Part shown: piece by piece, positions 3,131 to 28,285 of the stretch | Position numbering within the stretch: position 1 is the first letter of the stretch | Layout: each line of letters begins with the position of its first letter | Origin: Eutreptiella sp. 'Long Island Sound 2002' | Taxonomy: Eukaryota > Protista > Euglenida | Length of the DNA: 64,000 nt | Reading direction: 5' to 3' | NCBI GenBank assembly: GCA_964036045.1 | Contig: OZ038378.1 | Span: 175,832,001 to 175,896,000 of the forward strand | The notes under the pieces: model-generated | What the model saw: only the letters and a program-made list of their open reading frames with translations | What the model was told of the DNA's origin: nothing | The model's database searches: none | Position numbers and translations under genes: made by a program

Positions 3131-4604
3131 CTGTAGCCATCAAGAAGGCATTTATGCCACGTCCTTGAAAACAATGCAGAGTGGTAGCCCTGGACAGTGC
3201 AGCCTAGAGACGGCAAACTTCACTAGCGAAAACTACACTACCATGACCCCCCCCCCTATGGTGCGTCCTTTGGCCTCGGTATTGTATCCTGCCCATAAAA
3301 ATGAGCATGGCTGAGAATGCACAGCTTCCACCCCCACTCAGTGGCGCTGAATCAGTACATTCCCTTACTGTAGATCCCGATGACAGTACCCTAGAAATCG
3401 GGTCGCCTGGGTTCCACTTTGATGGTACGAAATGTAGCCTCAACCGCAATCCACTCCAGTTCACGGCATGTTTGTTGTATGCGCCGTAGCATTCCCCCCT
3501 CCGTCCCGATGATGCATTTTTGTTCTCCTCAGCGGTACAGTTCAAATAGTCCAAATTGCAAGCAGATTGTCCACTCCCACACTCTCTCACGCTCTTTCCG
3601 ACCCTGCTACGGTGCAAGCTTAATAGCTTGTTTGACCCCGCGTAGTTCAGCTCCTCACTGGTTCCATACCAAACTGGAGGTCCCATAGTTGTATGCCCAC
3701 ATCCGCACCCCATAATCCTTCCGACCATATAAGGTGATACTGTGCTCTGCCACATCCACAAAGCAATCAATGTCCTTTCTCCACGTACCACTCTAGCCAC
3801 CCCATGCCGAGTGTATAGGGAAGTTGAGTGGACCGCCCGGGAGAGAAAACAATGCCCCAAACCAGTGGACCCACGGTCCGGCTTATGAAGGGACTGGAAA
3901 CAACATGCTAGATGCCGCCTCGAAGCTGGGATGGTATCATTTGGTGTTGGTCATATCTTGTGGTAGCCAGCCTAAGCCATAGGTTTAGTGTGCCCCCCAC
4001 GTATGATGCCCATGACTCGATTCTCCACATGTCCCCATGTAGGATCTTGCCCATCTACATTGCATGTTGTGACTTTATGCTCATGATCCAAACATGCGTC
4101 CTGGGTATCTCTGCCAGCAGGCCATGGCCTGTTCCACATCCGCGCAGTGCTCAAAACCAGTATGTTACCGATTATTGTGGCAGTATTCTTGCAGTGTGTG
4201 CACATTGTCACAGTGTGTGGGCATTATATGCATATTTGGTAAAAGTCACGAGATACGAAACCCTGTAAAACCACCCAACACCTCTGTGTAGCAAGGAAAG
4301 GTAAGCAACATGATCATGTTTAAAAATCTGCCATCTCCAAATGCAAAACAAGGTTCTCCATCCGTGCATGATCTATTGATAGATATTTGGTCCACATCAG
4401 TCCTGTCCGAGCATTGTATTCAACCCACCAACCAGACTTTAATTTTTATGTATGACTGCAGGGCCGTTGGCGTCATGTGATTCTCCATTCTCATCATAGG
4501 ACAACAAGGGTTGGAGGTGGGTGCAAAGAGGGTGGATCAGGGGTGAACCAGGGGGAAAAGAGTGAACAAAAAGTGGGCAGAGTGCCCCATGCGCCCCTAA
4601 AGTA

Positions 4605-4708
4605 CCCCCCCCCCCCTGTCCTAGCTACGCAAAAGTCCCAAATTAACACGGTCCCTACGCCTACTGTAGCTTGGACAAGGGCATAGCTAGGACAAAGGGG
4701 GGGGGGGG
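4605..4708. mobile_element. 104-bp MITE with poly(C)/poly(G) termini and TA TSD
   Basis: TA-C12-TGTCCTAGCTACGC ... GCATAGCTAGGACAAA-G12-TA. The internal GGTCCCTACGCCTACTGTAGCTTGGACAAGGGC is shared with 8428-8788. Confidence 0.75.
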
Positions 4709-14476: not shown

Positions 14477-14944
14477 TTATGCTGACCTCTTCGAGTTTAT
14501 GGAATTAAAGATACTGCCAACGGTATTATGGAGCTTGCCGCCGCTCCCGGTTCCGGTTCGAGGGGCCGGGGTATTCAAGCCGCCGTTCTTGAATTGCGGA
14601 GTTATAATTACGTGCAAGTCCCCATGTTTGGCGTTTTGTAGATGGAGCCATTGATCATTTGGCTCTCCTTGAACCAAGCTGTGCAGAGTCATACGATAGG
14701 TTCCGAGGAGATCGGAACCGAGGAAGTCTTTGTCCCGGCACTCGAAGTATAGCTCCGCCATGTGGGGATCTGAGACCTTGAAAATGAACCGCTGTTGCCA
14801 GACTGGATCCAACGTCTTCTTCATCACCACCGTCTTGTGTTGAGTTCCCTCACATTCCAGGACAACAAAGGGGTCACTTTTCCCATTCCAATCTTTCGCC
14901 ATCAGATTGCGAGCCTCGACGACAACAACTTCCAGCGAACCCAT
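14477..14944 (-). CDS. Intronless single-C2-domain (Ca2+/phospholipid-binding) protein, 155 aa
   Basis: MGSLEVVVVEARNLMAKDWNGKSDPFVVL...KTVVMKKTLDPVW...FECRDKDFLGSDLLG is the classical C2 pattern with the Ca-binding Asp residues. Confidence 0.92.
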   Translation of the reverse strand: MGSLEVVVVEARNLMAKDWNGKSDPFVVLECEGTQHKTVVMKKTLDPVWQQRFIFKVSDPHMAELYFECRDKDFLGSDLLGTYRMTLHSLVQGEPNDQWLHLQNAKHGDLHVIITPQFKNGGLNTPAPRTGTGSGGKLHNTVGSIFNSINSKRSA

Positions 14945-14957
14945 TATAAGCAAGCGT

Positions 14958-15157: not shown

Positions 15158-15295
15158 CATGGGAGGGAAGCTTGGACTACCTTATCATGGTAGGGAAGGC
15201 TGGGCAGACTACGTCATGATGGTGGGGAAGGTTGGGGAGACTACTTCATCATGGTTAGGGAAGGTTGGGGAGACAACTTCATCATGGTGGGACTG
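15158..15295. repeat. Degenerate ~32-33-bp minisatellite (about 4 units)
   Basis: CATGGT(A/G)GGGAAGG(T/C)TGGG(G/C)AGAC(T/A)AC(T/G)TCAT units at about 15186, 15218, 15250 and 15283. Confidence 0.7.
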
Positions 15296-15565: not shown

Positions 15566-16732
15566 CCAAATAATCGTGGAAACCTCGCACCACACGTACT
15601 ATGGAGGCCCCACGTTGCCCAAATGGCAAAAGGAGAAGGAGGAATAGGGGCAAGTATATTCCAAGCATCTCAAGAGGAAAGAACAAGAAGGATTTGCATG
15701 GTTGGCTCATTAGTCACTTGTAATGTAACCTCAATTGTGTTGGAACATTGCTTGATGACAATTCACTGCCACACTTCTTAGGAGAAAACTGGCAAGCGCA
15801 CAGTGTTTGGTGACACAAGGGAGTTTCTCTCTTTGCGATTGCACAGTACGGATTCACACCACCATCCTGTTGCTCCCTCTTGCTTAGCAAACACAGGAAG
15901 AACCAGAATTCCATGGGTCTCAAGCTGCACGTGGGAATGCTTGGTTCAACTTGGATCATCATCCGTGGAGTGCGTCATTCCATCCGTCTCAACCTGCACT
16001 TGGGAAGGCGTTTGGTCCCAACCATCACTTCTGAACTCGTCGTTCAACTGTAGTTCGCTTCCTCTTAGCGTCCTCTTCAACAAACAATCATTGATAAAGG
16101 AAGTCGTCTCACCCTGCTCGTCCCTCTGACCTTCCACAAAAGTACACAACTGTTGCTGAAGAACTCTTGAGGTTGAAAAATGACGACATTGTTTATTACC
16201 ACAAATTGCGAAACCTCTGAAAGTTCCTGTACTGCTTTTGGAATGTGTCGATACTGTCAACAATTTTATTACGGATCTGAGGCACAAAGAATTTGTTCTT
16301 AATTCAACACTATTGGAGGTCGCTGAATGGATCATGGGTTGTTCATTTGCAGATAGGGGCCCCATGGGCACATTCGTGTACAAGCACTTACTGACACACC
16401 ATAAAGGACCAACCCCCGCAAAATTAAACGAAATTAAAAGCACTTCCACAGCAGCGACAGCACGTGCGATAGACCTGGGGCGTGGCGCACACGCGCAACA
16501 GCGCAACGCGGTGACGGTATGCAGACTGCGGCCCTAGCAGACTGCGAAATGCACGAACGCACGAACAGGCGACACGCGCATTTACGACGGCCGAAAAAAC
16601 GACTGCAACTGATCTACTGCAACTGATCTTCTGCTAAAAGGCGACAAGGATGTTTTGAACCGTTCTGCAGCCCAAATTTATAAAATAATTGCATTATTTT
16701 ATCGCCAGATAAGGCAACGATACCTTGCTGGT

Positions 16733-19700
16733 AAATCCACTCCCTCCTACTCATTTTCAACTCCCTCCTACTCATTTTCAACTCCCCCCTGCTCATTTTC
16801 AACTCCCTCCAAGTGAAAATCCACTCCCTCCTACTCATTTTCAACTCCCCCCTGCTCATTTTCAACTCCCTCCAAGTCAAAATCCACTCCCTCCTACTCA
16901 TTTTCAACTCCCTCCTACTCATTTTCAACTCCCTCCAAGTGAAAATCCACTCCCTCCTACTCATTTTCAACTCCCCCCTGCTCATTTTCAACCCCCTCCA
17001 AGTCAAAATCCACTCCCTCCTACTCATTTTCAACTCCCCCCTGCTCATTTTCAACTCCCTCCAAGTGAAAATCCACTCCCTCCTACTCATTTTCAACTCC
17101 CCCCTGCTCATTTTCAACTCCCTCCAAGTGAAAATCCACTCCCTCCTACTCATTTTCAACTCCCTCCTACTTATTTTCAACTCCCCCCTGCTCATTTTCA
17201 ACTCCCTCCAAGTGAAAATCCACTCCCTCCTACTCATTTTCAACTCCCTCCTGCTCATTTTCAACTCCCTCCAAGTGAAAATCCACTCCCTCCTACTCAT
17301 TTTCAACCCCCCCCTGCTCATTTTCAACTCCCTCCAAGTCAAAATCCACTCCCTCCTACTCATTTTCAACTCCCTCCTACTCATTTTCAACCCCCCCCTG
17401 CTCATTTTCAACTCCCTCCAAGTGAAAATCCACTCCCTCCTACTCATTTTCAACTCCCTCCTACTCATTTTCAACTCTCCCCTGCTCATTTTCAACTCCC
17501 TCCAAGTCAAAATCCACTCCCCCCTACTCATTTTCAACTCCCCCCTGCTCATTTTCAACTCCCTGCAAGTGAAAATCCACTCTCTCCTACTCATTTTCAA
17601 CTCCCTCCTACTCATTTTCAACTCCCCCCTGCTCATTTTCAACTCCCTCCAAGTGAAAATCCACTCCCTCCTACTCATTTTCAACTCCCTCCTACTCATT
17701 TTCAACTCCCCCCTGCTCATTTTCAACTCCCTCCAAATGAAAATCCACTCCCTCCTACTCATTTTCAACTCCCCCCTGCTCATTTTCAACCCCCTCCAAG
17801 TCAAAATCCACTCCCTGCTACTCATTTTCAACTCCCTCCTACTCATTTTCAACTTCCCCCTGCTCATTTTCAACTCCCTCCAAGTCAAAATCCACTCCCT
17901 CCTACTCATTTTCAACTCCCCCCTGCTCATTTTCAACTCCCTCCAAGTGAAAATCCACTCCCTCCTACTCATTTTCAACTCCCCCCTGCTCATTTTCAAT
18001 TCCCTCCAAGTCAAAATCCACTCCCTCCTACTCATTTTCAACTCCCTCCTACTCATTTTCAACTCCCCCCTGCTCATTTTCAACTCCCTCCAAGTGAAAA
18101 TCCACTCCCCCCTACTCATTTTCAACTCCCTCCTACTCATTTTCAACTCCCCCCTGCTCATTTTCAACTCCCTCCAAGTCAAAATCCACTCCCTCCTACT
18201 CATTTTCAACTCCCCCCTGCTCATTTTCAACTCCCTCCAAGTGAAAATCCACTCCCTCCTACTCATTTTCAACTCCCTGCTGCTCATTTTCAACTCCCCC
18301 CTGCTCATTTTCAACCCCCTCCAAGTGAAAATCCACTCCCCTCTGCTCATTTTCAACTCCCCCCTGCTCATTTTCAACTCCCTCCAAGTGAAAATCCACT
18401 CCCTCCTACTCATTTTCAACTCTCCCCTGCTCATTTTCAACTCCCTCCAAGTCAAAATCCACTCCCCCCTACTCATTTTCAACTCCCTGCTGCTCATTTT
18501 CAACCCCCTCCAAGTGAAAATCCACTCCCTCCTACTCATTTTCAACTCCCCCCTGCTCATTTTCAACTCCCTCCAAGTGAAAATCCACTCCCTCCTACTC
18601 ATTTTCAACTCTCCCCTGCTCATTTTCAACTCCCTCCAAGTCAAAATCCACTCCCTCCTACTCATTTTCAACTCCCCCCTGCTCATTTTCAACTCCCTCC
18701 AAGTGAAAATCCACTCTCTCCTACTCATTTTCAACTCCCTGCTGCTCATTTTCAACTCCCCCCTGCTCATTTTCAACTCCCTCCAAGTGAAAATCCACTC
18801 CCTCCTACTCATTTTCAACTCCCTCCTACTCATTTTCAACTCCCCCCTGCTCATTTTCAACTCCCTCCAAGTGAAAATCCACTCCCTCCTACTCATTTTC
18901 AACTCCCCCCTGCTCATTTTTAATCCTCTCGAAGTCAAAATCCACTCCCTCCTACTCATTTTCAACTCCCTCCTACTCATTTTCAACTCTCCCCTGCTCA
19001 TTTTCAACTCCCTCCAAGTCAAAATCCAAAACCTCCTACTCATTTTCAACTCCCCCCTGCTCATTTTCAACTCCCTCCAAGTGAAAATCCACTCCCTCCT
19101 ACTCATTTTCAACTCCTCCCTGCTCATTTTCAACTCCCTCCAAGTCAAAATCCACTCCCTCCTACTCATTTTCAACTCCCTCCTACTCATTTTCAACTCC
19201 CCCCTGCTCATTTTCAACTCCCTCCAAGTGAAAATCCACTCCCTCCTACTCATTTTCAACTCCCTCCTACTCATTTTCAACTCCCCCCTGCTCATTTTCA
19301 ACTCCCTCCAAGTCAAAATCCACTCCCTCCTACTCATTTTCAACTCCCCCCTGCTCATTTTCAACTCCCTCCAAGTGAAAATCCACTCCCTCCTACTCAT
19401 TTTCAACTCCCTGCTGCTCATTTTCAACTCCCCCCTGCTCATTTTCAACCCCCTCCAAGTGAAAATCCACTCCCCCCTGCTCATTTTCAACTCCCTACTG
19501 CTCATTTTCAACTCCCTCCAAGTGAAAATCCACTCCCTCCTACTCATTTTCAACTCCCTGCTGCTCATTTTCAACTCCCCCCTGCTCATTTTCAACCCCC
19601 TCCAAGTCAAAATCCACTCCCTCCTACTCATTTTCAACTCTCCCCTGCTCATTTTCAACTCCCTCCAAGTGAAAATCCACTCCCTCCTACTCATTTTCAA

Positions 19701-20386
19701 CTCCCTGCTGCTCATTTTCAACTCCCTCCAAGTCAAAATCCACTCCCTCCTACTCATTTTCAACTCCCTCCTACTAATTTTCAACTCCCCCCTGCTCATT
19801 TTCAACTCCCTCCAAGTGAAAATCCACTCCCTCCTACTCATTTTCAACTCCCTCCTACTCATTTTCAACTCCCTCCTGCTCATTTTCAACTCCCTCCAAG
19901 TCAAAATCCACTCCCTCCTACTCATTTTCAACTCCCTCCTGCTCATTTTCAACTCCCTCCAAGTGAAAATCCACTCCCTCCTACTCATTTTCAACTCCCT
20001 GCTGCTCATTTTCAACTCCCCCCTGCTCATTTTCAACCCCCTCCAAGTGAAAATCCACTTCCCCTCGCTCATTTTCAACTCCCCCCTGCTCATTTTCAAC
20101 TCCCTCCAAGTGAAAATCCACTCCCTCCTACTCATTTTCAACTCCCTGCTGCTCATTTTCAACTCTCCCCTGCTCATTTTCAACCCCCTCTAAGTGAAAA
20201 TCCACTCCCCCCTGCTCATTTTCAACTCCCTACTGCTCATTTTCAACTCCCTCCAAGTGAAAATCCACTCCCCCCTGCTCATTTTCATCTCCCTGCTGCT
20301 CATTTTCAACTCCCCCCTGCTCATTTTCAACTCCCTCCAAGTGAAAATCCACTCCCTCCTACTCATTTTCAACTCCCTCCTACTCA
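16733..20386. repeat. 21-bp satellite, about 174 units, three main variants
   Basis: A=CCCTCCTACTCATTTTCAACT, B=CCCCCCTGCTCATTTTCAACT, C=CCCTCCAAGTGAAAATCCACT, arranged mostly as C-A-B or C-A-A-B. Confidence 0.97.
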
Positions 20387-20454
20387 CACACAAGTGTCCC
20401 CCCACCGATCCAACCATCGACTTGCACACTATTGTTGTCATTGGAAATTCCGTC

Positions 20455-20503
20455 CCTATATATATCTACATACATACATACATACATACATCTACATATA
20501 TAT

Positions 20504-20559
<56 letters not shown>

Positions 20560-20585
20560 AAATATGTATATATGTATACATATGT

Positions 20586-20657
<72 letters not shown>

Positions 20658-20687
20658 GTGTGTGTGTGGATGTGTGTGTATGTATGC

Positions 20688-20725
<38 letters not shown>

Positions 20726-20800
20726 ACATATCTACATCTATATATATATATATATATATAGATGTACATACATGTATTTGTATATATATATATGTATATA
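20455..20800. repeat. (TA)n/(TACA)n/(TG)n microsatellite block inside the Foldback-like element
   Basis: Long TATATA runs are directly visible. Confidence 0.95.
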
Positions 20801-20875
20801 TTTCACTTGGAGGGAGTAGAAATTGAGTAGAAGGGAGTGGATATTCACTTGGGAGTTGAAATTGAGGGGGAGGGA
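20800..20875 (-). repeat. Short inverted, degenerate copy of the 21-bp satellite (right arm)
   Basis: TTTCACTTGGGAGGGAGTAG...GGAGTGGATATTCACTTGGGAGTTGAAATTGAGGGGGAGGGA is the reverse complement of C/A/B-like units. Confidence 0.8.
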
Positions 20876-22164
20876 GACGATTTGCGCACAGCGCTAAACG
20901 CGTTCAAAACAGCGAAGTAAAGGGCAACGCTCGCCAATCACACATCTGTCAGTAATTAATAATAAGTGACAGAGTGATCAGAAGGTGAAATTCGAACTAA
21001 TTAGAACAACAACATAAAATTCATACCTTTCTGTCAGTTGCGCTGGTTTTTTCAGTTACGCGTGTCGCCTGTTCGTGCGCAGTCTTTCGCAGTCTGCTAG
21101 GGCCGCAGTCTGCATACCGTCACCGAGCGCAACGGCTCAATCTCTGTCCAGCCGGCGTCAGCTGCCAGCCGGCCCTTAGAAGGGCCAGCACACTGGCAAG
21201 TAAATTAACGCCATACTCACAGTTCTAACACTAACAGTTCACTGGCCCCGGAATGTGAACCGCGCGAAATATCTGCGGTCCATATTTACCTGCCCTGCCG
21301 AGCAACACTTTGCACACGCGTGTCATAGTCACTGTTCAGTGTTCCTTACACTTATGACGCCATTTGAAGTGATTGCGCAAGTGTGCCATCGGTGGATTTG
21401 CCACTTCCCAGCGACAAAGGGATTAGAATCAGCCCTTCCTCCATGTGCATCGGAGAGAATTCCATCCCATGCAAGTTGGTGACAAACGAGGCAATCCTCC
21501 CCCTTGCGCGGGAGATGCTAGCCCGTCCTCCAACCCATGGTCCCGGAGAGACGCGGCCCATCTACCACCTCAGAGGGCGTTAGGGGACAAATGATGTCAA
21601 ATGTCCGGATTAGTAGTGTACACGAAGTCTTGAGTCAACACCCCGGCCGAGTGCTTGCGCACTGTACTTGAAATCATATCGGAAGCTGAGTGTCCACGTT
21701 ACTTTGTGGAAGCATTAGCTGCAAGATTACCGTGGTGAACGCCACAATATGTGAGTGGCAAAATGCTTTGATTGCTGTAAAGGCTTCGGGTGGAAACATG
21801 CGTTTAAGAGTGAGTTTAAGGGCGAGAGACTCGAAGCCCCACCTTGTCCCGGGATCTCTGGTGCTCCCGTGCTTTTAATCTTTTGGTGTGTAATACGCCC
21901 GCTCGGTATGAGTGTCCATCGCCCCTCGTGGAACTAGCGCACGGAATACGGGGCGGGTTCGAGGGGTGTTGAACGTCGCTTGTGCATAAGTGTTTGGTTG
22001 CGCTTCCGTTGTGAAGTGCTTTTCGTTCCGCGGAAGCGCAAGCGTCTCCTTGAAGTATTCGTGGCACGCGAAGCACGAAGCACCCGTGAAACGCAAGGGC
22101 AGAAGTTGCGAATCACCACGTGTTCATTTCTTTGTAGCAATCTTGCCTTTGGGATGGCAACGGT

Positions 22165-25100
22165 ATGGATTTAGGGGGACCACACCGGCGGTTTAGTATT
22201 ATTCGGCCAAAAAGGGATCATGGATGGAAAGTTGTTGACCTTTTCGCAAACGAAGCTAAACCAGACGGCAATTATTTCAAATTTAACCGATATGGCATGC
22301 TGTTGCGTCAATCGTGGGAGACATATCAATCTAGCGCCTCCGATGAGGCCTTCGATGAATTGAGGGCGGTCTATTTGAAAGTGCACTCCAATGCCCCTAC
22401 CAACTCGAATGGTAAGGATGTAGAGTTGCCGATCAATTTGCTACATGCTTTCGTTGAGAGGCTCAAACGCTTTGCGGATGCTATTGACGATGGTTCCACC
22501 CGCGATGTGGTGATGAACAACGAATCATTTTTGCAAATGAAGAGCACCGTCCATGCACTTGAGATCATGGCTCGATGTCCATTCAACCGCCGTATTTTGT
22601 GTGTATGTGGAGCATTGGAGTGCGTTGTGAATCTTCTCGAAACGCTATCCGCCGTCCTTTCTGTCCTGGCGGTAAGCTTGACGGTACAACGCATAGCCAC
22701 TAATGCCGGTTCCTCCGATGAGCATTGTCAAGGTTCTGTCATAGCGGTGAGCTTTCGACTTCAAGTCGTGGAGCAATGTGTGGCATTCCTTTGCCGGTTT
22801 GTGGAAGTTGGTGATGCTTCACGGGGCGAGAATTTAAAGGTGCGGGCACCGATGACGACCTTGGATGTCATTGAGGCATTTTACCGTGTGGCTTTGACGG
22901 AAGGAGATCAACCACCGATGCACTCTAATGTGGTGCGTGCAATCGTTTCAACCTTGAAGTTTTTGAAAGCTTGTGAAAAGGAGAGCCTGGAATTCGACCA
23001 AATGTTTACTATTCAAACGTCGTTGCTCACCATTGCCGGTTTCATCATTGAAAATGTCCCGGACGAGATTTGGTGGAACGCGTATGGTGGGTTTGAAGTG
23101 ATGTTGTCATACCTAGGGTTTCCGGACGAATGCCGAAACGAGTTGGAGGAAGTTCCGAGGGAGCTAGGTAGGGAACCCATTCAAGAACAGGATTGCGATG
23201 ACGGCGCCCGGCAATTCCATGGTCCTAACCTCTCGCCACTCGAAAAAGAACCGTGTGAATGTGCCGCCTTTGAGGACAAGCGATGCCGTAAGGGAGGTAA
23301 CCTTTGTGAGCTCGACATTCCTACCCTTGATACCATAGCCTCGGCACGCCCGACCTCAGAGGCCAACCCGTTTGCCTGCAACTATAGATGCTGTTGCCAA
23401 GTGTCGTTTCCCGAAGTTCCCAAAGTGCGTTTGAATCGCTACTTCAACATTCAAATCAAGGTTTTGGCTGTGCTCGGTGCGTCAATTCAGCGGCACCCAA
23501 GAAGCATGCTTTTATTAAGTAGCTTGGGGCTGTGGGACAAGATTGGGGAGATGGGCCTCTTCATAGGGACGTATTTTTCGTCTTTCCACACGGGAAATGT
23601 TGTGCAAGCCTCATGCACATGTGGTGTTGGCCAACGCGAGGTCCCGTCCCCATCCAACGCAAACGTCGAAGGGGCGGAACTCAACTCGAAAGTCGTGTAT
23701 CGTAAGTTGCCCGAGGAACCACAACTTGGACCCCATGCTATCTTGAACGATGCCTCAAGTAACAATGTGCAAATCGGGGCTTTCATCTCGGAGCTCGGCG
23801 CATTTTCTGAACGGGCCGAGGCAGTTTTGGAGTATGCCAACCTTAAAGAGCAAGAGTGCTTGGCATCTATCACAGAGGCAAAGAGGACGGGGGGTCGTAG
23901 GTTCTCGACGAGGCGCCGAACTTCGTGCACGGCAAATTTCGACCCGCTTGTCGCCGACTTGGAGCAGCTACGGGCGCTTGCAGGCCGCCTACGATCGATT
24001 TTGCTCCACACCTTCCAACATCGCGCCGTTTCTGAGTCGCTTCTTTTGCACATCGCTCGCCACAACCTAAGGCACGTGGGGGAGATCCAGATTTCGTGTC
24101 TCGACACATGGATCCAAATGTTATGGGCCGCAGCGGACGACACCGTTGTGTTGCGGAAGTCCTCAGCCGCGACAGTCACTGCCATAGCCGGCCGCCCCTC
24201 GCAGGCCGTTGAGCCCGAGATGCCCATGTCGGTGCGGCGGGGCTCGAAGCTTGTGTCCTCCGCATTGTATGGGGTGTTGTTCGGCGACTACTTTTATTTC
24301 CTTGCCCCGATTCATGTTGCAACCGACCCTGACATGACCCGTAAACTCTCCGGCATCCGCTCCATGGTCCGGGAGGGCGTCCTCTACATCCTCAAGTTCA
24401 TGGCAACACGATTGCATGCCAACTACAACCTTCCCGAGCTTGCCTGCTTATTGGGCGTCTTGGCGGGCCACAGCCGGGAGACAGACGTCTGCACAGATCT
24501 GTGCACCGTGCTCTCATACATCATTCAGCACAACCGCCGCGCCAGTCTCCCGCTCATCATGGAGCTGCAAGGTTTGGAGGTCCTATGCCAGTGCCTCGAG
24601 GCGCAGAATCGCGCATTGGAGGAGCTATTGATGCGGCCGCCGGTGGACCTCGCCACACTTTCGGCGTCCGTTTCGGCGCAGAACAGCGTGCTCACTGTGC
24701 TGGACGAGCTGTTGACGACCGATGAGGCGAAGGCACTGGCCATCGAGGATCCACGAGTCCCGCTCGCGGGGTTGCTGGTGAAGTGTCTCCCACAGCAGGC
24801 CCTGCGCAAGTTTTGCGTGCGGCACCTGCGGGCGCTATTGACGCTGCATAATCCACGACCGTGGAACTCGCCCAACAACTTGGAGCCTCTGGTTGCACAC
24901 CTGTTCGGGATGCTTGTAAAGTGCCGCCGGGGAGAGATCGGTGGCTACCCGCTCCTGTGGGAGATCATGGATACTGTCCAGGCGGTATTGTCCATTTTGC
25001 TGCAGCGAGAGAGTTCCGCACTACTGCATGGGAACGGCACTGGACCGCACCAGAATTTGAAAGCCACCCAGCGCCTCTTCCACAAACACGGGGACTGCTT

Positions 25101-27831
25101 CAACGGTTTGATGGAGATGCTGCGCTCACCGCCGCAGTCTCCGGCGGATTGGGCTGAAGTCTGCACGGAGGAAATGCCGTCGCGCCTCTGTTGCCAGGTG
25201 CTGAAAACTCTCACATTGCTGCTGAAGCGCAACACCAAAATGAAGGCGGAGTTCGAGCGGCTGGTGGGCCCCCACAAGCTGGCCCAGGGGATTCGCGCCT
25301 GTGTGCCGGGGTTAGGCTGCCCCGAAGTCTACGACAGCCTATTCCAGATGCTGGTGGAGGATGAGTCGACGGAGGAGACCGGCATTCACGCGGAGGCGAC
25401 CCGTACGATCCAAAACCCGTTCGTACTCTTGGCGATACTGGAGCTCCTGCTGTGCACTGACTTCGACACTCTGTTGGGCTGCGGGGTACTTAAGCGCATG
25501 GCGGACGTCATTCAGGCCTCTGTTCTGAACCTCGCGACGGCAGGCCAAGCCCCACTGATGGAGCCCCTGCTCCGCATGCTGGTAGGTTGCACCCTACCTG
25601 AGGTCCGCCAGCAGGTGGAGCGCTGCGTCCAGCTCGTGGGCCGCAACCACATCCGCGTGGCCCAGTTCAAGTCCCTTGTGACCAGCCTCAAGGATGCGCC
25701 TCCGAGTGCGAAACCGGAGCTGTTGCCGAGCGTTATCCGTATCCTTCACAACATGGCGCGTCCGACAGTCGCTGACGAGCCCGAAATCCCGCATCAGGTG
25801 CATCCATGTGGGTTCTTTGCGATGGACGGCACGTTCTCGGGGCTGCGGCTGCCCGCCATCCGCGGGTGGCCCACCACACGCGGCTACACCTTCGCGACGT
25901 GGCTGCGGCTGGAGCGGCTGGAGCCATTCTTCGTGCGCCGGAAGGGGCTGCCGCCGGAGAACGTGCCGTTCACCCCCGGGGGGTCCGGCGCGCCAGTTCG
26001 CTACACCCCGTGCCTCTACAGCTTCATGAACCCTCGCGGGCGCGGCTTCGAGACTGTGTTTAACGAGAAGTCCCTCGTATTCCGTGTGCACACCAGCAAG
26101 GGGGTGTCCGAGGCCACGTTGCCCCACCCCTTTCAGCCCCTGCGGTGGTATCACATCGTTGTTACTCACAGCTGTCCGATCGACATGCGTCTCATGAAGG
26201 GCGAGTGCAAGCTTTTTGTGGACGGGACGCTGTACTCCAAGACCACCCTGTCGTACCCGCGGACACCGTCCAACGGGCTTGACCTCAACTTCATCGGCAC
26301 GGACCAGCGGGGCTGGCGCAAGCAAACGTCGTCCACCAGCATCTGCGGGCAGATGACCGCGGTCTACCTTCTAGACGACGCCCTCACGACGCAGCACGCG
26401 CAGGCCCTGTACGCCCTCGGCCCCGACCACATGTCTGCCTTCTCCCCAATGGACTGCCCCATGGGCTGCAAGCCCGAAACGGCCGTGCTCTTCGACGGGG
26501 TCTTCTGCGGACGGATCACGATGGCGTTCAGCCCCATGGCCCAGGACGGACGCCGGCTGTGGAACTTGGCGCGGTCGCAGACCTCGTCGCGCGAGGCCAC
26601 GACGGCGGCGGCAGGATGCGTGGCGGCGATGCTCAAGAGTACCGTCGTGTGCTCCAATCTCCACAACAATCTGCACATGGTCGATGTGCTGGACTGCATC
26701 GGGGGGGCTCGAATGCTGCTGCCCCTCTTTACGATGCTGCTGGACCCCAACAACAGCCTTGATGCCCGGCGCTTCGCAACGCAGGCGCCCCCGGCCCAGG
26801 AGATGGTAAGCCCTGCTTGCATCCCGCAGATGCTGGACCACCTTCTGGCGTTGCTCGCTAGCGTTCTGGGGCAGCAGCGGGCGAGGCGGGTGGAGTTCGT
26901 GGAGTGTGGCGGATTCCAGATCGTGGGCATGCTGATCAGCCGCTTGGGGCAGTTCCTTACACCTTCGTGCGTTGAGCATCTGTACACTCTGCTGGTTCAG
27001 GACATGACAGACCCGAGCGAGTTCTTTGCCTGCCTCCGGTTCCTCTTTCTTGAGGGCGATCTGTGGGTCAGGGCGGCTGCTGATGTGCAGCAGAAGGTGC
27101 CGGAGTTGCTGCTGACGGCATGTTCGAGCTCCTCCCACACCGTCCCGGCGGTGCGGCAGCCCAAGGCGCTGGAGGCCATATTCAACAACCTGCGGTGGTA
27201 CTACCGTTGCTCCGCCGGAGAAGAAGGCAGTGCGGCAGCCCCGGCGCTCAACAACGCTCTGATCTGCGAAATCCGCGCGAAGTACCTGCAAGTTGTCCGC
27301 ATGGTGTTGACAAACGGTGCCCCCATGTCTGTTGCCGAGACCGCGCTCATCCTTCAAAACGTGTTGCACAGCCCTGAGCCGCATCAGGCAGGAGATCTGC
27401 TGTTGCTCCTGCTGCAGTTGCAGTGCGAGCCTCGGACCGGGGTCATGGAGCACCTCTGTGCCCTCGGGGCCTTGGAGGCGCTCACGTCGCTGCTGACATG
27501 CGACAACATCATCGCGCGCTGCGCCTGCATCGCCATCATCGGGAAGCTGGCGCTTGCTGTGCCTGGGCAGACTGGCATCGACGTCCGCGCCCCGTGGGGC
27601 TTCTGCTGCCTCGTGCAGAACCTCTCGATGTACCCCTTCTGCCTCACGACATACGGGGCCCTGCGGGGGGTGCTACTGGGGGCGGTCACCCCCCAGACCC
27701 CCTTGCCCGCCGCCTTCTGTCCGCTGCCGCGAGGCCAGCGCGTGGCATTTGCGGTGCCATGCGCGCTACCCGCCATGCTCGCGCTCACGCGGCGGCGGGC
27801 ATCACCGGAAGTCGCACGGATCGTGCTCCAG
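22165..27831 (+). CDS. BEACH/WD40 (neurobeachin/LRBA/NBEAL-like) gene, exon 1 of 8; whole gene 22165-43575, about 3620 aa
   Basis: 5667-nt open frame with ARM-like helices and the ConA-like domain motif GFFAMDG...GYTFATWLRLE. Donor CAG|GTTCCT at 27832. An in-frame AG acceptor at 22136-22137 could add upstream sequence. Confidence 0.88.
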
Positions 27832-28285
27832 GTTCCTGTGCCCTCCGCTGCACCTGTTCTGCCGTCGCTGCCGCCTCCTGTTCCTCCTGTTCCTGTGCCG
27901 TCTGCCTTCTTGCATCGCTCTTATTGTCTCTTTTTGCCCCCTCCCTTCTTCTTTTCCTCGTCCTTTTCCGCCTCCATTCGCCCGGCCGTCTAAATTCCTG
28001 GTTGTCAGTCTGCCATCATCTTTTGCAGTGCCATGGCCGATTCTCATTCTATTCGTCTCCCCATGCGGCCACGCTGCCGCCGTCTTCTTTGTGCCTCTTT
28101 TGTTGCCACTCTTCAACCTTCTCTTCCACATCTTCCACACATCCGCGCTGTAGAAGGGGCACAGCAGGGGAGCGGGTGCAGGACTGCTGCACGGGGCGGT
28201 GGTGCAGGAGATGGGGATGGGCAGGGGAGCCGGCGGTATAGGGGGGGGGGAGGGTCCTTCGCTTTCTCTTTTCGTCGTGCCCCAG

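Follow-up and report, generated by a model that had tools for sequence, protein, structure and literature searches.

A repeat-rich element between two divergent Eutreptiella genes is probably an internally deleted Mutator-type transposon with an expanded subterminal array

A 64,000-nt stretch of the genome of Eutreptiella sp. 'Long Island Sound 2002' (the window) contains, between two divergent genes, a 4,617-bp element at positions 16509-21125 that includes a long array of a 21-bp tandem repeat. The first-pass annotation took this for a Foldback-like element in which one arm had become satellite DNA that the element could then seed elsewhere. This raises the question of whether the repeat is a satellite carried and spread by the element, or a regular part of the transposon itself. 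The features of the locus, in window coordinates, are as follows.

16500-16508, no strand: left TSD, AGCGCAACG; the same 9-mer recurs at the right flank
16509-16549, forward strand: left (A-end) TIR, 41 bp, perfect, from the alignment of both element ends
16550-16732, forward strand: A-end subterminal unique region with a 14-bp repeat in 2.4 copies, ACTGCAACTGATCT, recognised by identity to other A ends
16733-20386, forward strand: subterminal tandem array, 174 units of 21 bp sharing the conserved core ACTCCCTCC, from TRF and unit parsing
20387-20457, forward strand: 71-bp internal remnant between the array-distal junction and the left breakpoint of the deletion, collinear with the long family copy E111M
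20458-20801, no strand: (TA)n-rich tract (TRF), forming the B arm's outermost (TA)n block and including the right deletion breakpoint
20802-20882, reverse strand: inverted 21-bp repeat of the B arm, about 3.5 units, read from the sequence; the block is present in all copies
20883-21125, reverse strand: B-end subterminal region and right TIR, from identity to other B ends and the TIR alignment
21126-21134, no strand: right TSD, AGCGCAACG, matching the left 9-mer
14477-14953, reverse strand: divergent flanking C2-domain ORF (Pfam C2, 89 bits)
22165-27993, forward strand: flanking ORF with N-terminal domains of the neurobeachin/BEACH family (Pfam DUF4704 120 bits, Laminin_G_3 36 bits, Neurobeachin 27 bits)

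The perfect 9-bp TSD that had been proposed is found at both flanks of the element. The left TIR pairs with positions 21085-21125 with no mismatch over 41 bp, and in the end alignment the likeness goes on block-wise to about 105-130 bp, in agreement with the earlier description of a 41-bp perfect and roughly 100-bp imperfect TIR. A 22-nt core of the TIR occurs exactly twice in the window, against zero occurrences expected from shuffles, and the motif CAGACTGCG is present in two copies per arm, with a partial third in the right arm. The two ends carry different unique sequences. The left one holds the 3.65-kb satellite arm that had been described, as an array of 174 in-register units, and the right one the short inverted arm (about 75 bp in the first-pass annotation), as about 3.5 units. 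Together with the (TA)n tract, the TSD, TIR, left array and right units confirm the original observation in every detail. The presence of 9-bp TSDs supports assignment of the element to the cut-and-paste transposons of the Mutator (MULE) superfamily.

The insertion site is a 2.6-kb spacer between the C2-domain gene and the BEACH-family gene, which the element entered by cut-and-paste transposition with a 9-bp duplication. The ATG of the BEACH-family ORF (1,942 codons) at 22165 lies 1,031 bp past the right TSD, and the start of the C2-domain ORF lies 1,547 bp from the left TSD, close to the distances of about 1 kb and 1.6 kb given before. A genome search found no empty-site allele and no paralogue of the site, the flank being single-copy. 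A protein search with the neighbouring BEACH-type protein returned the window's own protein as the sole match.

A genome search with the terminus, which the first-pass annotation had suggested as a check, found it about 615-690 times: a TIR 20-mer has 615 exact matches, and a 38-nt TIR core has 690 matches at up to three mismatches (339 forward and 351 reverse), compared with none for the reversed control. For both probes the matches are distributed about equally between the strands. The family is young and comprises about 300 copies in the 2.3-Gb genome. Its members share a TIR of 41 bp or more and two distinguishable ends, A and B, both with inward-facing arrays of a 21-bp unit that has ACTCCCTCC as its conserved core; these arrays are long at A and form short blocks interleaved with (TA)n at B. 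Against the corresponding ends of other copies, the window element shows 87.7-96% identity over its A end (16509-16735) and 94.5-99.2%, mostly 97-99%, over its B end (20883-21125). Perfect 9-bp TSDs, for which there is no sequence consensus, flank 15 of 17 other paired copies, so the absence of such duplications at other copies, which had been named as grounds for rejecting the proposal, is not what is seen.

Long family copies, which measure 17-18 kb, code for a transposase of the MULE DDE type. The strongest Pfam match, to the full-length MULE domain PF10551 (62.3 bits, E 6e-17), lies at L032:4763-5746 inside the copy E82M, which has the same ends as the rest of the family; E111M (36 bits) and L045 give weaker, split matches. 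The top neighbours of the transposase in a protein atlas are all MULE clusters. The suspected Mutator relationship is thus borne out by the 9-bp TSDs and by a MULE transposase in copies with the same ends, the latter having been listed as something to look for. None of the three long copies examined has an intact single-ORF transposase, each carrying frameshifts. A search for a SWIM-type zinc finger after the DDE domain gave a weak match (9.8 bits, E 0.78), and Pfam scans of the long-copy ORFs gave no FLYWCH match. Apart from a borderline SET domain, neither the 819-codon upstream ORF nor the other minus-strand ORFs of a long copy have a Pfam match above the curated cut-off. In short copies, the N-terminal part of the 819-codon ORF is fused to the C-terminal part of the MULE ORF. 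A homologue search with the MULE ORF yielded only near-identical copies (79-97%), all of one source, and found no named relative at a greater distance.

Comparison with the long copies also accounts for the right half of the window element. Collinearity with E111M extends from the left to ...GGAAATTCCGTCCCT and is then lost, marking the left breakpoint; positions 3992-4617 of the element align to E111M 17234-17858. The breakpoints are thus joined at 20457/20458 in the window copy, which lacks about 16.2 kb of the interior and with it the entire coding sequence. The window copy derives by internal deletion from an autonomous element of 17-18 kb, and its (TA)n tract is a remnant of the B arm. 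In all copies examined such a tract adjoins the B end, and longer copies have two further inverted 21-bp blocks in this arm. The (TA)n "core" of the first-pass annotation is therefore real as a tract, at 20458-20801, but is better described as this remnant than as the core of the element. Since the transposase-coding interior has been lost, the window copy is not autonomous and could be mobile only if a full-length copy supplies transposase. The deletion may have arisen by abortive gap repair, a typical route to derivatives of the Ds or Mu1 type; like the derivatives of maize MuDR/Mu1 and Ac/Ds, the window copy is non-autonomous by internal deletion and keeps both ends.

The same collinearity bears on whether the element could be a one-off chimera, in which unrelated ends or nested elements happen to flank a tandem array that was there before. 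Irregular relatives without matching TSDs do occur: one copy, L049, has A at either end, and E188M is a B...B pair. The window copy, by contrast, has an A end and a B end, both of this family and in canonical order, a perfect 9-bp TSD, and collinearity with full-length copies on either side of a single deletion. We consider a chimera scarcely credible; the TSD and the collinearity refute it. Instead, the window element very probably belongs to a young MULE family of several hundred members, as a non-autonomous copy that has undergone internal deletion and in which the canonical A-end array has expanded.

In all copies examined, the array sits at one fixed subterminal position, within the A end, which in long copies is found downstream of the transposase gene. 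In the window copy it is 3,654 bp long, its 174 units of 21 bp following one another without a single indel in register (TRF and unit parsing), and it shows higher-order periods of 63, 84 and 147 bp. Each unit combines the invariant 9-nt core with a free 12-nt spacer and spans two helical turns. The array-distal junction is widespread, a 41-mer across it having 115 genome matches at up to three mismatches.

The arms of different copies were compared, as the first-pass annotation had advised, and arrays range from 457 bp to about 3.65 kb, the window's being the longest. In 34 other copies the A-arm array measures 457-2,366 bp (median 1,045 bp), and in L048 it reaches 2.75 kb; at 3,652 bp in this comparison, about 3.5 times the usual length, the window array is the longest of about 36 measured. 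Its 174 units, compared with a family median of about 50, agree with the proposal that one arm had been amplified. The junction variant of the window element is also carried by two sampled copies, C4 and C14, whose arrays are of normal size, at about 0.8 kb and about 1.24 kb respectively. The window array contains exact internal repeats of 231 bp at a lag of 1,134 bp and of 130 bp at a lag of 2,058 bp, and such kilobase-scale internal duplications in the longest array fit unequal exchange at the locus. We suggest that the array was lengthened by replication slippage or by out-of-register (unequal) recombination, either at the present locus or in the copy's immediate lineage. The unit variant TTTTCAACTCTCCCCTGCTCA, considered as a sequence private to the window copy and hence as proof of in-situ amplification, was rejected, as it has 132 genome matches in many copies; the argument for in-situ growth therefore draws only on the comparison with siblings and on the internal duplications.

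The element might also be real and its 3.65-kb array an artefact of assembly, through over-expansion or through collapse and merging of reads. Tandem arrays are error-prone in assemblies, this array is the single longest of those measured, and its length is known from one assembly. However, the 21-bp register is held perfectly over 174 units, the first and last units are those that are conserved between copies, the unit variants follow one another in a diverse, non-periodic order with no stutter of one block, and other copies attain 2.4-2.75 kb. We therefore regard an artefact as quite unlikely and continue to favour genuine expansion of the family's own array, with the proviso that the length of the window array is that of a single assembly.

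If the 21-bp repeat were a satellite that the element carries and disperses, it would be expected to occur apart from the family's ends, and the first-pass annotation had accepted that its proposal would fail if arrays mostly lacked the TIR. In a sample comprising the 21 array loci of C1:0-104 Mb, 20 adjoin correctly oriented terminal or subterminal sequence of the family. Nine of these loci have no perfect TIR nearby, and eight of the nine were assigned by position from pattern searches; the locus at C1:1417169 is the only one of the 21 without an assignable family terminus. The search used the consensus A-end/array junction rather than the window's exact one, which is found in only six copies and defines a small subfamily. 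Genome-wide there are 1,160 exact repeat dimers, equivalent, at a mean of 6.6 per sampled element, to about 176 elements, which is no excess over about 300 elements, although the count is assembly-based and satellites may be collapsed in it.

These results weigh against a Foldback-type carrier in which one arm has turned into satellite and transposition seeds independent arrays, as proposed for Tetris in Drosophila virilis. Such a carrier would be consistent with the roughly 8-fold variation in array length among copies and the 174 units of the window copy, and the array travels with the element by construction; there is also a published precedent for repeats internal to transposable elements becoming satellite DNA (PMC4079207). 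However, family ends lie beside 20 of the 21 array loci checked, the dimer count does not exceed what the elements account for, and the biggest arrays are 2.4-3.65 kb, with none of tens of kilobases seen. Siblings have arrays of normal length, and the expanded state has therefore not been passed on. In Tetris, moreover, the repeats occur alone, in kilobase-sized arrays, in 39 of 69 contigs (PMC4079207). We judge a satellite carrier very unlikely: there is no sign, among the 21 sampled loci or in the genome-wide dimer count, that the window element seeds free satellite DNA. The seeding role proposed earlier thus falls away, as the 21-mer is the canonical subterminal repeat, present in every copy examined and almost never found away from a family end. 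We conclude that the 21-bp array belongs to the standard subterminal make-up of the family and is not an independent satellite. This corrects a more exciting reading of the locus, in which the transposon was spreading a satellite rather than bearing a repeat of its own.

The description of the element as Foldback-like holds for its arms, which are inward-facing tandem arrays of variable length, but not for a symmetric foldback around a (TA)n core, since the two ends, A and B, are distinct. In classical Drosophila Foldback (FB) elements, most of the length is taken up by the arms, a pair of long inverted repeats that are nearly symmetric. FB resembles the window family in its 9-bp TSD, its arms of variable tandem subrepeats and the prevalence of non-coding copies, and the window family likewise has inward-facing 21-bp subrepeats at both ends, in numbers that differ between copies. 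Near-symmetric long inverted arms, however, are not present: in the window copy 3.65 kb faces about 80 bp, 41 bp is perfect and about 65 bp more imperfect, so that, unlike in FB, the sequence able to pair is limited to about 105 bp and, in the repeats, 80 bp at most, and the ends can be told apart. On the similarity of its transposase, FB has been placed with Mutator (cited in PMC3169594).

The closest published parallels share some features of the family. Tetris, a foldback element with repeats of about 220 bp in both long TIRs, has non-coding copies, composite ends, variable internal tandem repeats in its arms and TSDs of 8-10 bp, and changes in its repeat number have been put down to unequal crossing-over (PMC4079207), as we propose here for the window element. 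The window family differs in its 21-bp unit, in its very unequal arms, in arrays that stay inside elements, and in having MULE-encoding partners with the same ends, whereas no autonomous partner was found for Tetris (PMC4079207). Tm1, a Mutator/Foldback family of root-knot nematodes, has elements of 1-2.6 kb and a 496-aa Phantom-type transposase with FLYWCH and MULE domains (PMC3169594). Like the window family, it has 9-bp TSDs, asymmetric terminal motifs, and MITE-like derivatives alongside copies with a MULE-domain transposase; its TIRs consist mostly of tandem motifs of about 14 bp in variable number, and their length differs between ends and copies, again as in the window family (PMC3169594). 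FARE of Arabidopsis, as far as it is cited in the same paper, can be likened to the window family alongside Tm1. Unlike Tm1, full-length window-family elements measure 17-18 kb and have a much larger coding region that includes the borderline SET-domain ORF, and FLYWCH was not detected in them. A full-text literature search found no paper joining Euglena with "Mutator-like" and transposase. The family described here is a clean, well-delimited MULE family with Foldback-like composite ends and both autonomous and deleted members, in a protist lineage.

Judging by their position and orientation, and by analogy with other transposons, the 21-bp arrays most likely serve as subterminal sites, two helical turns apart, at which the element's own protein docks. 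In Ac, En/Spm, Herves and Galileo, transposase binding sites are few, scattered, inverted subterminal repeats (PMC3688188, PMC3143072); the candidate binding sites of the window family differ in that 20 to 170 units follow one another in strict 21-bp phase. The arrays could in addition be a docking platform of evolvable copy number, and the window copy the first step of a transition from transposon to satellite. The array would then have outgrown its function in a dead element and evolve by unequal exchange alone, beside the upstream regions of two genes. This is a tentative reading, and we think it unlikely. With arrays of 22 to 174 units, the family offers a natural length series for asking whether the number of subterminal repeats tunes transposition.

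Two further observations concern the family at large and the annotation of the window. Besides the regular copies with one end of each type there are irregular ones, a palindromic A...A copy (L049) and a B...B pair (E188M), neither with matching TSDs. The long ORFs of the window copy are read-throughs of the stop-free repeat, whose frames stay open for more than 1,000 codons; such spurious ORFs should not be annotated as genes.

We identify the element in the window as a MULE that is non-autonomous and whose composite ends resemble those of Foldback elements. It spans 4,617 bp (window 16509-21125; positions within the element count from 16509) and has one A end (left, with a long 21-bp array) and one B end (right, with (TA)n and inverted units). 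Its features and neighbours in the window are:

14953: start of a divergent C2-domain ORF
16500-16508 and 21126-21134: target-site duplication (TSD) AGCGCAACG, an identical 9-mer on both sides
16733-20386: 21-bp tandem array of the A arm (TRF), with higher-order periods of 63, 147 and 294 bp
20458-20801: (TA)n-rich tract, right side
20802-20882: ~3.5 inverted 21-bp units, right side
22165: start of an ORF of 1,942 codons with Neurobeachin, ConA-like and DUF4704 domains

End alignment gave a perfect inverted match over the first 41 bp, beyond which the ends resemble each other block-wise (CACGAACAGGCGACACGCG, GAAAAAAC, GCAACTGA) until ~105-130 bp. The 22-nt terminus core occurs exactly twice in the window, compared with 0 occurrences in 100 shuffles. 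Cut at 21-bp steps, the array consists of 174 units of 29 variants with no indel, most of them with the core ACTCCCTCC, either intact or changed at one base. The first-pass annotation had described a perfect 9-bp TSD, a 41-bp terminal inverted repeat (TIR) with imperfect similarity further in, a long left array facing a short inverted right one (3.65 kb vs ~75 bp), and divergent BEACH-type and C2 neighbours; this description is real and accurate. Because the array is stop-free, both strands show spurious open frames 631-1,191 codons long (window 16617-20823), which are read-through of the repeat and not genes. Between the element and the C2-domain ORF is a tandem repeat with a 32-bp unit (3.7 copies, 85% matches; window 15175-15292), and GC content is 58-64% across the BEACH-family gene region (window 24000-46000) vs 44-52% around the element.

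We searched the 2.28-Gb assembly, in which the window corresponds to C1:175,832,001-175,896,000, with the TIR and the 21-mer and compared arm lengths, as the first-pass annotation had proposed. The 38-nt terminus, with up to 3 mismatches, gave 339 forward and 351 reverse matches (690 termini), with none for a reversed control; the 20-nt terminus core has 615 exact matches. These counts correspond to roughly 300-350 elements. When plus/minus pairs were rebuilt from fetched DNA, 15 of 17 had perfect 9-bp TSDs of unrelated sequence, and the other two were irregular A...A and B...B arrangements. The family's two ends differ, the A end running on into CATTTACGACAACCGAAAAAACGACTGCAACTGATCT and the B end into GTAACTGAAAAAACCACCGCAACTGACAGAAAGG. 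Identity to other sampled copies is 94.5-99.2% at the window B end (mostly 97-99%) and 87.7-96% at its A end (95-96% for most), with A-end differences falling mostly in one short block. We conclude that the family is young. The assembly contains no empty insertion site elsewhere.

Some copies are rearranged or nested. L049 (C2:33876917-33882048) is a palindromic A-end...A-end copy whose 162-bp termini are duplicated in tandem, and L035+L036 (C1:188591413-188608333; C1 is contig OZ038378.1) pairs two B ends; a matching TSD is absent from both. At L007/L008 (C1:9809108-9831492), one family copy sits in the TIR of another, its 9-bp TSD GTCTGCTAG and flanks being TIR sequence. An A end with an identical 20-bp flank recurs 3-4 times within 8 kb at L013-L015 (C1:27.877-27.885 Mb), which looks like local segmental or tandem duplication including the element end. 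A Gypsy-type LTR retrotransposon with RT, RNase H and integrase domains is nested in a 9.5-kb family copy (L046:2401-6819).

Two full-length copies of 17.7-17.9 kb have MULE-domain reading frames on the B-to-A strand:

C1:82578579-82596234: E82M (L031+L032)
C1:111136415-111154272: E111M (L033+L034)

The Pfam MULE transposase domain in E82M scores 62.3 bits (E 6e-17, whole profile covered), bearing out the proposed MULE relationship; in E111M it scores 36 bits and is split by a frameshift. All ten nearest protein-atlas clusters are MULE families. The long copies also contain a borderline SET-domain ORF (22.8 bits, Pfam), an ORF of 819 codons without a Pfam match, a 53-bp repeat in two inverted arrays, and a 42-bp repeat. 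Copies of 2.4-9.5 kb form a deletion series, in which the first 100-435 codons of the upstream 819-codon ORF are fused to the last 200-640 of the MULE ORF. The window copy is the most extreme member of this series: it tracks the long copy for 71 bp past the array (...GGAAATTCCGTCCCT, ending at 20457) and then jumps to the B arm, into its outermost (TA)n tract, with element positions 3992-4617 aligning to E111M 17234-17858. Hence, the (TA)n tract reported between the arms is present, but it is a B-arm remnant rather than a "core". Relative to a long copy, the window copy has lost ~16.2 kb, including all coding sequence. We conclude that the window copy inserted by cut-and-paste with a 9-bp duplication, lost its interior, and depends on MULE copies acting in trans. 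The interior may have been deleted through interrupted gap repair.

Structurally, the family groups with the "Mutator/Foldback" elements Tm1 and FARE, which have 9-bp TSDs, MITE-like derivatives, MULE transposases and ends assembled from short tandem motifs that vary in number (PMC3169594). Since such ends arose repeatedly in evolution, "Foldback" denotes a shape, not a lineage (PMC3169594). Classical FB elements have long, near-symmetric arms, whereas the window copy does not. Our literature search found no paper combining Euglena and Mutator-like transposases.

In every copy examined, the 21-bp array begins ~225 bp from the A terminus, and the B end has inverted blocks of the 21-bp unit with (TA)n tracts between them. 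Unit-by-unit coding showed that arrays of different copies start (ac[b]ea...) and end (...ijbdac) similarly but differ in the middle. We conclude that the 21-bp "satellite" is a standard component of the element. The inward-facing, 21-bp-phased arrays at both ends could be binding sites for an element protein, as suggested by the analogous subterminal repeats of Ac, En/Spm, Herves and Galileo (PMC3143072, PMC3688188).

The first-pass annotation had also suggested that the element could seed and disperse satellite arrays. A search for exact dimers of the unit gave 1,160 genome matches; the first 100 define a sample of 21 loci (C1:0-104 Mb), which we cross-checked by position against the terminus, two A-end subterminal words and the distal junction. 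At 20 of the 21, the array adjoins family ends in the expected orientation; the remaining locus (C1:1417169) is a single dimer match with no assigned family end. Sampled elements average 6.6 dimers each, so 1,160 dimers represent ~176 elements' worth, with no excess over family copy number. The two outcomes that the first-pass annotation named as refuting, 21-mer arrays mostly lacking the TIR and other TIR copies lacking 9-bp TSDs, were not observed, but the seeding proposal is not supported either. In Tetris the situation is reversed, with most repeat-containing contigs carrying only repeats (PMC4079207).

Pairing terminus positions with the conserved array-distal junction (115 genome matches) gave array lengths of 457-2,366 bp (median 1,045 bp) in 34 further copies; the array of one fetched copy, whose junction is a variant, is 2.75 kb long. 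By the same measure the window array, as assembled in a single assembly, is 3,652 bp, the longest seen and ~3.5 times the median, in agreement with the proposed amplification of one arm. This expansion, the greatest in the family's subterminal arrays, is the one mildly notable feature of the window copy. Its A-end junction variant is common to only six copies; in the two where the distal junction could be located, arrays are ~0.8 kb (C4) and ~1.24 kb (C14), so the expansion is not a subfamily trait. We considered one unit variant as private to the window copy, but it is widespread (132 genome matches), and we dropped the in-situ argument based on it. Within the array, a 231-bp stretch recurs exactly at a distance of 1,134 bp, and 130 bp from the array start recur without change 2,058 bp further in. 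Such kilobase-scale, in-register internal duplications are what unequal exchange between misaligned arrays would be expected to produce, and the array-length variation is centred on the window locus.
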